44,290 bases of DNA from Macrostomum lignano. Its lineage: Eukaryota. The notes under the pieces are model-generated. The model saw only the letters and a list, made by a program, of their open reading frames with translations, ran no database searches and was not told the DNA's origin. The position numbers and the translations under genes are program-made. Position 1 is the first letter of the stretch. Each line of letters opens with the position of its first letter. The stretch is taken from assembly GCA_002269645.1 (NCBI GenBank), contig NIVC01003204.1, positions 1 through 44,290 of the forward strand, given 5' to 3'. Below are positions 16,466 through 19,803 of this stretch, piece after piece.

Positions 16466-19400
16466 ATGGATGATACAGCGGGGACCCAATCGCTTTTTTA
16501 AATTACAGTAAATAGAAGCTTGGACCAAAAGACAACCGCTAAGCCGCAGCAGCAGCCTCAGCCGTCACGAGCCTCTTTGCTCAGCAGCTGCGCGCCAACG
16601 AATCCAAGGACAGAGAATGAGGCGGATGATGAAGTCAACGCTTCTACCGTTAGAAGCGACGGCTTCAACATTTATGCGGCCGGGTTTGGCTGCGATAGCA
16701 GAGCCCCGTGTTGGACTGCGGCCAGACTTTTGTCCGATTCGGCGTCACCCGGGACCATTCTCTATACCGGCCTGTTTGACGCCATCGGCGGTGGCCCGGA
16801 CTGCGCCAGAGCTGTGGCCGCAATGTCAGCTGACTATGCCGCAGTGGCGCACCTGCACACTCCGAGTAGACAGCGTCGGCACAGCTGCAGCTTCGCAAGA
16901 CAGGGTACGAATTTTGCAGCTGGATGCAGCTTTTTGATAGTCCCGACAGAAACTGCCTACCTGGATACTTTGACCGACACGCCTTCATTCCTAACTCACA
17001 TATAAGAACCAAGTTATTCTAAAATCTAAAATCTATTTCCAATCTTCGCCCCTTTTGACCGACTCTGACTAACTCGTAAATTTACTCAGGTATCAATCAA
17101 ATCCAATAGTCTCATGCTCGTAGATGACTGGACATTTTTAGAAGGAGGGGCTGTGTGCACCGCGGCGCACTTTAAGCGACATTGAGAGGCATTACTGCCC
17201 ATTCCGCCTGAGCCATGAGCATGAGCAGGCACACAAGCGCGCGGATACGTACGCAGTCATACGCACAATCACACACTCACACAGGAGTGTACAGGGGCCC
17301 AACTTTATTTATCGTTATATGCATGTACACTTCACTGCCTTGGGAGTTGGCCCTCAATGGCGGTAATTGCACGAGCAGAGTCAAGCCGAGATTCCAATTT
17401 AGCCCCGAATCAATGTAAACATGCCCTTGGAATCGAGCCTTGACCTACTAGGCTACGACCCCCTAACTTGTATCTCCCAGCAGGTGTCTCACCCAGTATG
17501 TCCATCTGGAGAAATCGCACTCTGAGTGATTCCCAGGCCAGCTGGGAAGAAACGCTCCGAGACGACAATGCTCAGCATCAGCAATTAGCGACACACCTGG
17601 GAGGCGCTGGACTGTTAGCCGACCGTCTTCCGGCTGACCTGCTCGATTGCCACTCGGATGCCATCGATCGGTTGCTGTCGGACAGAATCCCGGTCTCGAC
17701 GGTCGAGGACCGCTTAGGCTGGGCACTTCACCGGCTAGACGCGGACCTGTGCGGCCTGACCCTGCCCAGCCCCAGCGACCCCTGCTGTGTCCCAATGCAC
17801 GGCGAGTGGGCCCGCCGACTGGCCCAGACCGGAGCAGTTGGCACCGCCGTTTCTATGGAAACGTCCGTCCGCAGTGGCGGGCGGTGCCTTCGAATCGCTC
17901 AAATCGGGGACGGAGCTGCCGTTATCGGGTCAGTTAGCGCCACTGGTGCCACTTGGGACTGGCGCCGACCTGTGGCGCCGCATACCATCGAGAACTGGCG
18001 GGAGGTGAGGCGCCTAGCGCAGCGTTTCCCGGAGCCAGCAGCTCGGGCCGACCTGTTTGCTCGGAACTGCTTCCTTGGCGAACAGGTAGGAAAAAGATCG
18101 TTTAGCTTGCAATGGCCTTAATTTCATTGAAACGAAGCCCTCAAATATATTGTTGTGTTGTGCACTTTTGCGGTGCCAATGCACCTAGCCCGGCGGGCTG
18201 AGTCAGCCCTCAATTAAGTGTTGGCAGTTTGTTTTCCCCCCTTTTTTGTGCGTCAGAGGCTTTAGCCTTGGCAGGTTTTGCTCGCCCTGCGTGGCGATTG
18301 GCCGCGGCCAGCCAGTCGCGTAGTGATTGGCTGAGCCGGCGGCGGGCTGGGTGGCCGTCCCCCGGGGGGAGGGGTTGGCTGGGGGTTGGTGGGGTGGTGG
18401 TGTTGAGAGCACGTGGCCCTCCCCCCTCCGCGGGCGTGTGCTATTTAACATCGCTCGCGGCGGGTTGGAGCGGTGCGCGCCTCGACTGCCCCCTCGGTAC
18501 GTGGTTCTACCGCGGAGCTATATCTACAGCCAGTACACAGCCCAAGCTATACAAGTCCCCTCGTTGAATAAAGAAAAATACAAAGTAAAGGCCTTCTTCC
18601 TGAGCCCGGAGCAACAACTGCCAGCAAAGTAAGTCACTGCCTTGTCTCTGTCATTTCGGGAGCTGCAGCAGGGACAGTCCGTGTGTCCTGACGCCGACTC
18701 AGGGGGAATAGGCCAGGTTAGTCAGATAGGGGCAACCCTGTACCGTAAGCCCGCTGTGCACCGACGCCAGCTCGTGCGCCCTGACGCCCTGCTGAAGGTG
18801 ATCGACATCACAGCGTCCCTACGCGTGTGCCGGCCACTTGGGAGCGTCCTGACGCCCCAGACTTAGGGTCCCGTGCGGACACTCGCGCCCTGACGCAGGC
18901 CAGCACGGGCCCGCGTACTCGGACCCTCGTAGGTGCCCCGTCCTGGGAGTCGCGAGTACAACAATATTTAAATAAATAAAGTAAATCAAAACGTACATAT
19001 TGGCTGGATGGTTGTGAGCAATCTGGTGCGAAATCGTCCCACAACCAGTACTGAAGGAATTCTGCCCATTCGGCAGACTCCTGAGTACCTGCAAGCGCGC
19101 CAATACTGATACGCACGCTCACACAGGGTGCACAGCAACCCTGACATACTAATCGTCAGGCATGTACACCCAAACTAATGCGGCCGCTCGCGGAATCGAA
19201 CCAGGGGTCGTGGCGCGAAAGTCAGCTGCTCTGCCAACGACAGACCTTTAAGGATGCTTTTTGGAATAAAACCCTTTAATTATTGGTGTTTGCATCAGCC
19301 CTGGGAAGGACGAAACGTCACCAGAACACTGCCCCCCCCCTCAGGAGGCCACCCGCGCTTTCGGTCGTGTCGGACTCAAATGGTCCGTCGATCGGTTGAC

Positions 19401-19803
19401 CGACGTCGCTTGGGCATCGCCGACAATGCCGACTTTGCCAGCCAGTTTGACCGGCTTGCCGGAGGTTGCCGCGGTGCAGCTGGCGCCAGCCGACCGTCTG
19501 GTTTTGCTCGGCTCGCCCGGGCTCTGGAACGCCGTGGAACCCGACGAAGCGGTCGCTTGCATTGGCGACAGCCTCACCGAGGAGTCCGACGGCAGTGTTG
19601 GGAAGAATCCAGCAACCGAACTGCTGCGTCTGGCCCGAAACCGAAGTGGCCGACACGGCCGCGCTGACCGCTCGGACGGCCTTGCCACTGTCGTCATCGA
19701 GCTGCCATCGAGCGAAGATTTCGAATGCGAATTCGATGACTGCGAAGCTGAAGAACGAGACGAAGATGAAAATTCCGGAAAATTCCCAGAAAATTCTTTC
19801 TAG
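16466..19803 (+). CDS. Pyruvate dehydrogenase phosphatase (PDP/PPM2C)-like PP2C-fold protein, probably catalytically impaired
   Basis: Three exons join in frame: ~16466/16509-16904 (ENE...[20 protein letters not shown]...DYAAVAHL); 17484-18085 ([14 protein letters not shown]...[17 protein letters not shown]...NCFLGEQ); 19345-19803 ([16 protein letters not shown]...SLTGLPEV...[15 protein letters not shown]...[10 protein letters not shown]...RSDGLATVV). These align with PDP motifs VFDGHAG, VANxGD, HNxxNxxExxRL, RLLGxLxPFRAFGDVxFKWS, LTAEPEV, LATDGLW, NAATHLIR and RDDITIIVV. The start codon is uncertain because a TAA at 16499-16501 interrupts the frame after ATG 16466. Confidence 0.78.
17165..17440 (-). 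mobile_element. tRNA-derived SINE copy C, PDP-like intron 1
   Basis: High identity to copy B; B-box-like GGAATCGAGCC at ~17429-17439. Confidence 0.7.
18151..18963 (+). mobile_element. Solo LTR (Ty3/Gypsy-like) in intron 2 of the PDP-like gene
   Basis: Starts TGTTGT (18151) and ends ACAACA (18963), a perfect 6-bp terminal inverted repeat. Flanked by ATAT at 18147-18150 and 18964-18967 (4-bp TSD). Internal AATAAA at 18567-18572. GC-rich relative to its flanks, with no coding domain. Confidence 0.72.
19095..19245 (-). mobile_element. tRNA-derived SINE copy D (internally deleted), PDP-like intron 2
   Basis: The reverse strand reads GACTTTCGCGCCACGACCCCTGGTTCGATTCC (Glu-like anticodon arm plus B box), followed by the shared body. 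Confidence 0.65.

Follow-up and report, generated by a model that had tools for sequence, protein, structure and literature searches.

A three-exon gene of Macrostomum lignano encoding a divergent PP2C-fold protein of the pyruvate dehydrogenase phosphatase subfamily, a candidate pseudophosphatase

The locus described here, on the forward strand of a 44,290-nucleotide stretch of Macrostomum lignano DNA (contig NIVC01003204.1, positions 1 to 44,290; hereafter the window), raises the question of whether three separate open reading frame (ORF) fragments at 16520-17005, 17468-18121 and 19396-19803 are parts of a single gene and, if so, whether that gene still specifies a protein. The fragments form one frame when spliced at 16904/17484 and 18085/19345, and the product would be a divergent relative of the catalytic subunit of the mitochondrial pyruvate dehydrogenase phosphatase (PDP), a PP2C-family enzyme, in which most of the catalytic residues are replaced. 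The reading that we favour, with somewhat more belief than doubt, is that of a present-day gene for a divergent, PDP-derived pseudophosphatase.

The splicing scheme had been put forward in a preliminary description made from the letters of this stretch, and it stands: both introns have canonical GT..AG sites, the frame is kept through both joins and the spliced frame contains no stop in 484 codons, against 8-17 stops in the other five frames. A first-order Markov model predicts 12.2 stops in 484 codons, and a zero-stop outcome arose in 0 of 5000 simulations; each exon taken singly is also more open than expected (P 0.016, 0.007 and 0.031 for exons 1-3). Exon 1 (16509-16904, on the + strand like all features of the gene, with its first full codon at 16511) carries a degenerate motif 1, GFGCDSR (16682-16702), followed by motif 2, LFDAIGGG (16772-16795). 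It is separated by intron 1 (16905-17483; 579 nt, GT..AG, 47% GC, 7-10 stops in each frame) from exon 2 (17484-18085), in which a poorly conserved insert, predicted to be disordered, precedes RLDAD (17732-17746) and the retained QIGDGAAV (17900-17923). Intron 2 (18086-19344; 1259 nt, GT..AG) has a C-rich tract 5′ of its acceptor and leads to exon 3 (19345-19803), which holds RAFGR (19354-19368), KW (19378-19383), GSPGLWN (19510-19530), a 10-residue motif (19666-19695) and an acidic C-terminal tail before the stop codon TAG (19801-19803). Taken together, the introns have 7-17 stops in each frame and a GC content below that of the exons. The letters at junction 1 read GACAGG/GTACGA...CTCCCAGCAG/GT, and those at junction 2 GAACAG/GTAGGA...CCCCCCCCCTCAG/GA. 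When canonical PDPs were used as tblastn queries, the same three collinear blocks were recovered independently and no other block was found in the window; ARAGORN and Rfam found no RNA gene within 15000-21000.

Further support for the first join comes from protein databases. An exhaustive HMMER search of 1.84 billion representative proteins with the spliced product returned two near-identical clusters, all from M. lignano, whose members are the UniProt entries A0A1I8HXB6, A0A1I8HY89 and A0A1I8IMZ8 (P0001, P0151 and P0002 below), fragments that cover exons 1-2. P0001 and P0151 are collinear with exon 1 and reproduce junction 1 (FARQ/GVSPS), and over exons 1-2 P0151 (331 aa) matches the window without a difference. 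P0002 reads FARQ/DADLCGL, with exon 1 spliced to an alternative in-frame 3′ splice site within exon 2 (AG at 17737-17738, the exon resuming at 17739), the use of which drops 85 codons; such a join seems likelier to derive from a transcript than from ab initio prediction. No protein containing exon 3 was found in the databases by the exhaustive HMMER search or by word-indexed searches. Two of the latter, with the entire protein and the exon 2-3 portion as queries, returned no matches at all, the first missing even a 100%-identical fragment, so that their silence reflects a limit of the tool and not biology; together, the HMMER search and a third word search leave three M. lignano fragment entries as the only ones present. 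Homology is the sole support for junction 2, because no annotated protein spans 18085/19345; the alignment with the Protein Data Bank (PDB) sequence of PDP1 runs ungapped across it (NCFLGEQ/... against DRLLGLLMPFRAFGDVKFKWSID). The source names of the three UniProt entries (Aldo_ket_red, Deacylase and Metallophos_C domain-containing) do not fit their sequences, either through a metadata mix-up or through naming by gene instead of transcript. None of these fragments has a Pfam match, and the PP2C identity appears only once exon 3 is joined. The gene had been called hidden, which is fair in that sense, whereas exons 1-2 were already present in the three fragments. We conclude that the locus is a real spliced three-exon M. 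lignano gene, for which the present model corrects the annotation.

The family to which the product belongs is indicated by sequence and by predicted structure alike. Pfam PF00481 (PP2C) matches residues 263-434 of the 487-residue query, a segment spanning junction 2, with E 4.5e-10 and a score of 40.1 bits, which exceeds the curated cut-off of 20.3. Among PDB sequences PDP1 matches best, at 7e-11, the next PP2C following at 0.009, and the top 10 HMMER matches with checked source names, which include the PDP1 of Taenia, Trichuris and insects, are PDP-like or PP2C proteins with at most 37% identity. From a 27-sequence alignment, AlphaFold2 (AF2) gave a model with a predicted template modelling (TM) score of 0.75 and a predicted local distance difference test (pLDDT) of 85-94 in the core strands and helices, while disorder is predicted for residues 1-35 and 126-177 and for the acidic tail. 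Superposed with Foldseek, this model finds three PDP1 structures as its best matches (E 8e-23 to 3e-22, target-normalised TM 0.73-0.77), ten orders of magnitude ahead of the next fold at 9e-13 (TAP38, TAB1 and plant PP2Cs); there were 94 PDB matches at E <= 0.001, and 50 of 50 among the matches listed have the PP2C fold. Both the family search and the superposition thus bear out the PDP-like identity first suggested from motifs, and the proposed PDP motif series is recovered as a collinear, full-length alignment with PDPs in which the PDP-specific insert is included. Judged by its sequence and model, the product is a PP2C/PPM-fold protein that belongs by descent to the PDP subfamily. Its position within that subfamily could not be settled by a neighbour-joining tree, where it forms a long branch and does not group with the M. 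lignano PDP; its mean distance is 0.85, against 0.66 among the other proteins.

The active site is where the protein departs most clearly from an enzyme. We take the metal ligands of PDP1 to be D54, D73 (with the G74 carbonyl), D347 and D445, equivalent to D38, D60, D239 and D282 of PPM1A. The PDP1 numbering was checked against the PDB chain: IED holds D54, FDGH D73-G74-H75, ATDGLW D347, and the first Asp of RDD is D445. The equivalent positions were mapped from an alignment with 26 PDP-like proteins. Just one of the four ligands is retained, as D90 at the D73 position, with S63, P390 and S442 occupying the other three, so that the binuclear metal centre of the PDP subfamily is not conserved. 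Around them, E53-D54 of PDP1 corresponds to D62-S63, G74 to A91, H75 is lost (DAI), RAFGD has become RAFGR (R340), GLWD is GLWN, and D445-D446 corresponds to S442-D443. The motif changes reported earlier are therefore all confirmed (GFGCDSR for NxPxEDR, LFDAIGG for FDGHGG, RAFGR for RAFGD and GSPGLWN for ASDGLWD). The accompanying claim that the D38 and D239 equivalents are lost needs qualification in one part: the replacement of D239/D347 by proline is unambiguous, whereas D38/D54 is replaced by S63 with an aspartate, D62, adjoining. A further replacement, at the D282/D445 equivalent (RDD to RSD), had escaped notice and leaves the site more degraded than was claimed. By our own tally of roughly nine or ten active-site columns, D90, D274 and D443 alone are kept, and the survivors of the active site are the bridging aspartate D90 and the GD motif. 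To judge from the alignment, the D54 and D445 equivalents may have shifted by one residue to their neighbours D62 and D443; the motif-1 loop has a pLDDT below 50 in the AF2 model. With the M1 ligands D347 and D445 replaced by P390 and S442, the M1 site is gone, and by analogy with TAB1 and PHLPP2 a state with a metal in M2 only is conceivable. Among columns conserved in at least 85% of PDPs, 42 of 70 are kept. Sequence and model support the description of the protein as a pseudophosphatase, with the residues that define the fold and a confidently predicted PP2C core retained and catalytic residues missing.

M. lignano also keeps a PDP in which every motif is intact (P0007 and P0156; PAA49167 and PAA93896), the gene for which, at Mlig_3_7 locus L001 (NIVC01000020.1), is interrupted by introns after VEDR, HDQQ and ATQQ but not at LLGE/..RAFGD, as judged from exon boundaries taken from tblastn. 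A recent segmental duplicate of this canonical gene is rejected on the difference in intron positions, and the window gene is an old, fast-evolving paralogue that does not stem from the recent duplications of M. lignano. We also exclude a long-dead pseudogene, since its protein's identity to any PDP is only about 21-29% and yet 484 codons and both splice-site pairs are intact; a search for premature stops, frameshifts and broken splice sites found none (0 of 484 codons; introns GT..AG). We infer from protein divergence of more than 70%, set beside the intact 484-codon frame and splice sites, that the divergence, including the multi-base catalytic substitutions, would have built up while the reading frame was under selection.

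The gene's 5′ end is the part of the model that has changed most from the preliminary description, in which the protein was given an acidic N-terminus beginning MDDTAG. The ATG concerned (16466-16468) is followed after 11 codons by an in-frame TAA (16499-16501), so that 16466-16501 is non-coding; gain or loss of a single T in the T6 run does not rescue this start, for a stop is still met. The argument built upon it, that an acidic N-terminus is unlike a mitochondrial presequence, is void, since MDDTAG lies outside the coding frame. Immediately downstream, 16494-16508 reads TTTTTTAAATTACAG, and its last six letters, TTACAG (16503-16508), preceded by a T-rich tract, fit the trans-splice acceptor motif [T/C]TNCAG published for M. 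lignano (PMC8629364) and probably form a spliced-leader (SL) trans-splice acceptor. In all three UniProt models the sequence opens with NRS, from the first full codon 3′ of TTACAG. Similarly, the canonical PDP model P0007 starts PPHILHY right after a TTTCAG acceptor (L001 5979-6003), and its true methionine is likely to lie about 15 residues in, at MTIRRAAARPAWLRRW, which is presequence-like. In the canonical PDP models at NCBI the real methionine is thus probably preceded by 10-15 spurious N-terminal residues. Starting 5′-partial ORFs at the trans-splice site is thus an annotation habit in M. lignano, because of which we read 16508/16509 as the 5′ end of the mRNA body. The motif and the model starts together suggest that the gene is most likely SL trans-spliced. 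The published leader is 35 nt long and ends ...TTGCATG (PMC8629364). Initiation at the AUG of this leader is rejected, as at the TTACAG acceptor it would read AUG-UAA, offset from the PP2C frame.

Translation of the full domain today is presumptive, and a number of observations weigh against the pseudophosphatase gene that we favour. There is no in-frame AUG upstream of codon 105 (16823-16825); this first in-frame AUG lies 3′ of motifs 1 and 2, and initiation at M105 would leave the product without the first strands and D90. Four out-of-frame AUGs precede codon 105 and open a 109-codon ORF, which has no Pfam match. The GC content at third codon positions (0.65) barely exceeds that at second positions (0.55), and that of the cadherin exons in the window is 0.75-0.84. 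Losses affect 28 of the 70 conserved columns, structural ones included (HP to FP, PPY to PAS, R327C), deletions have removed two conserved C-terminal segments, and the protein is the longest branch of the family tree. Intron 2 contains four AATAAA signals on the + strand (18567, 18971, 18975 and 19265), the first after the stop codon being at 20413, so that transcripts may stop short of exon 3 and intronic polyadenylation, yielding a product without exon 3, is possible. Exon 3 lacks annotation or transcript support in the proteins searched, no NCBI Mlig_3_7 annotation entry matches the product, and the exhaustive HMMER search found no orthologue among the representative proteins. Several of these points would be expected if the locus were a transcribed relic, that is, a formerly functional, divergent PDP paralogue lately stripped of its initiation codon or first exon, a unitary pseudogene that is untranslated or translated in fragments and has not yet gained stops. 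The first 104 codons without a start, the AUG-UAA read from the leader and the upstream ORF, the weak third-position bias relative to neighbouring genes, the lost structural residues and deleted segments, and the absence from the NCBI annotation and of orthologues would all suit such a relic, as would the partial 5′ and 3′ ends of all three database models. Large recent duplications in the M. lignano genome (PMC5730564) would, moreover, supply plentiful redundant copies. We regard a relic as possible but on balance unlikely. Against it stand the 484 open codons, 112 of them at the 5′ end (P 0.027), a stretch that includes the 104 before M105 and can be aligned to PDP motifs 1-2, and the two intact splice-site pairs. 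We estimate roughly that the frame should be broken once neutral drift exceeds about 1-2%, so that any pseudogenisation would have to be very recent in comparison with a protein divergence of about 75%. The three copies or alleles, too, keep the frame wherever they are covered, the sole indel among them being 3 nt.

The missing start codon could instead mean that the gene is functional and that its true 5′ end has been missed, a cis-spliced first exon or a non-AUG start then giving a full-length pseudophosphatase, a variant of the reading that we favour to which we attach little credence. One candidate is a speculative first exon at 16113-16152 on the + strand (ATG...G/GTAAGT), which has a perfect donor and a phase that fits 16509, would give MLTSCLYQACLFG-V-NRSLDQ... 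when joined there, and is the sole candidate with a consensus donor among 54 upstream candidates scanned. By our estimate chance would supply about 1.7 candidates of this kind, so that it is a lead only; it is, furthermore, absent from all three database models, its 13-residue peptide is unlike a presequence, and tblastn with canonical PDPs found no homologous N-terminal exon upstream in the window. More favourable to a missed 5′ end are the frame before M105, open and homologous to PDP motifs 1-2, and, on our own reading, a PP2C frame that remains open through the whole spliced leader with in-frame CUG and UUG codons. A more specific form of the same idea, a Macrostomum-specific pseudophosphatase made without a conventional AUG (by way of a non-AUG codon of the SL-joined mRNA or a first exon absent from the annotation) and, with presequence and metal centre lost, acting outside the pyruvate dehydrogenase cycle as a decoy or regulator that binds phospho-E1-alpha or a partner, we consider improbable as a whole. 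Very unlikely is a still active phosphatase whose unconventional metal site uses D62 and D443 in place of the displaced ligands. An aspartate does lie one position from two of the lost ligands, and D90 and the GD motif are retained; the D347/D239 equivalent, however, is a proline with no acidic neighbour (GSPGLWN), and the general-acid histidine and the aspartates of RAFGD and GLWD are all gone.

We propose, then, that the pseudophosphatase gene arose as a divergent paralogue of the mitochondrial PDP catalytic subunit in which the PP2C core was kept. Phosphoserine hydrolysis by the canonical mechanism would be impossible for its product, which could hold at most one metal, in the M2 site, and, if made, the protein would work without catalysis, binding a phosphoprotein or partner or serving as a decoy for it. 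Any more definite role as a scaffold, substrate trap or regulator, as had been suggested, is pure supposition. The mitochondrial role of PDPs, which dephosphorylate pyruvate dehydrogenase E1-alpha and bind the E2 lipoyl domain, is improbable for it, because an intact canonical PDP with a presequence-like N-terminus is encoded in the same genome. The interest of the case lies in the precedents of TAB1 and, lately, PHLPP, which indicate that dead PP2C-fold domains can be important regulators, and to which a PDP-derived protein would add an origin from a metabolic enzyme. Our literature search found no paper on a PDP-type pseudophosphatase, the sole match to both terms being a review of trypanosomatid phosphatases (the content of which is not used here); if translated, the protein would be the first inactive PDP-subfamily member to be described, from a gene that M. 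lignano annotation represents by domain-less fragments only. Its impact is limited by its restriction to one lineage, in a genome rich in recent duplicates, and by a full-length protein that is still hypothetical, and the gene is best regarded as a candidate for a real yet fairly ordinary lineage-specific pseudo-enzyme.

The rest of the window is that of eukaryotic DNA, with a retrotransposon, pieces of other genes and many tandem arrays. About 1.1 kb downstream of its stop codon begins a non-LTR (long terminal repeat) retrotransposon on the - strand (20901-23985), whose ORFs encode an endonuclease (23530-23985), a reverse transcriptase (21914-23533) and an RNase H (20901-21617). Upstream, a 3-kb AT-rich block (13360-16460; 29-36% GC, with flanks of 50-64% GC) that holds no ORF with a recognisable product lies between two divergent genes, the PP2C gene and, oriented away from it on the - strand, a gene with a cytosolic carboxypeptidase N-terminal domain (12660-13246; Pfam PF18027, E 1.6e-5) and a probable start codon. 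Large cadherin-repeat exons on the - strand (32835-33929 and 40833-41717; Pfam PF00028, E 5.8e-44 and 7.5e-8) probably belong to a single large gene of protocadherin or FAT-like type. On the + strand, the terminal part of an ORF derived from repeats (1620-1719) has a weak match to the last helix of Ion_trans (0.002, below the cut-off) and may be a cation channel exon. Tandem arrays with periods of 14-42 nt and up to 106 copies (683-1606, 2543-2855, 6968-7543, 8276-9150, 10249-11736, 25196-25738, 27645-27978, 28691-28981, 31544-31845, 35810-37805 and 43691-44150) are the source of most long six-frame ORFs, which are not genes.

Among known systems the closest to the window protein are PDP1 and PDP2 (PDB 2PNQ, 3MQ3 and 6V0T), with which it shares the PP2C fold, as the best match in sequence and structure, a whole domain that is collinear down to the PDP-type helical insert, and the RLDxD, GD, RAFG, KW, PEV, GLW and ATxLxR signatures. 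It differs from them in being just 21-29% identical, in the replacement of three of the four acidic metal ligands, the catalytic histidine and the RAFGD aspartate, in the deletion of two C-terminal segments and the possession of an acidic C-terminal tail, and in a gene in which neither presequence nor start codon can be recognised; the canonical M. lignano PDP (PAA49167 and PAA93896) differs in addition in its intron positions. TAB1 resembles the window protein in having a PP2C fold with degenerate metal ligands and is among its Foldseek matches (E about 5e-12). It belongs, however, to another PP2C subfamily and has lost a different set of residues, and it is not among the PDB sequence matches of the window protein, with which it has no specific sequence relationship. 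TAB1 and PHLPP2, both PP2C-fold pseudophosphatases, keep the M2 metal alone, and the PPM domain of PHLPP, in which the canonical M1 and M3 ligands were lost in evolution, is reported to be catalytically inactive (PMC12002173). PHLPP1 and PHLPP2 are thus like the window protein in a PPM domain with lost M1 ligands, whereas they are multidomain PH-LRR-PP2C proteins conserved across metazoa and the window protein is a single-domain, apparently Macrostomum-restricted derivative of PDP.

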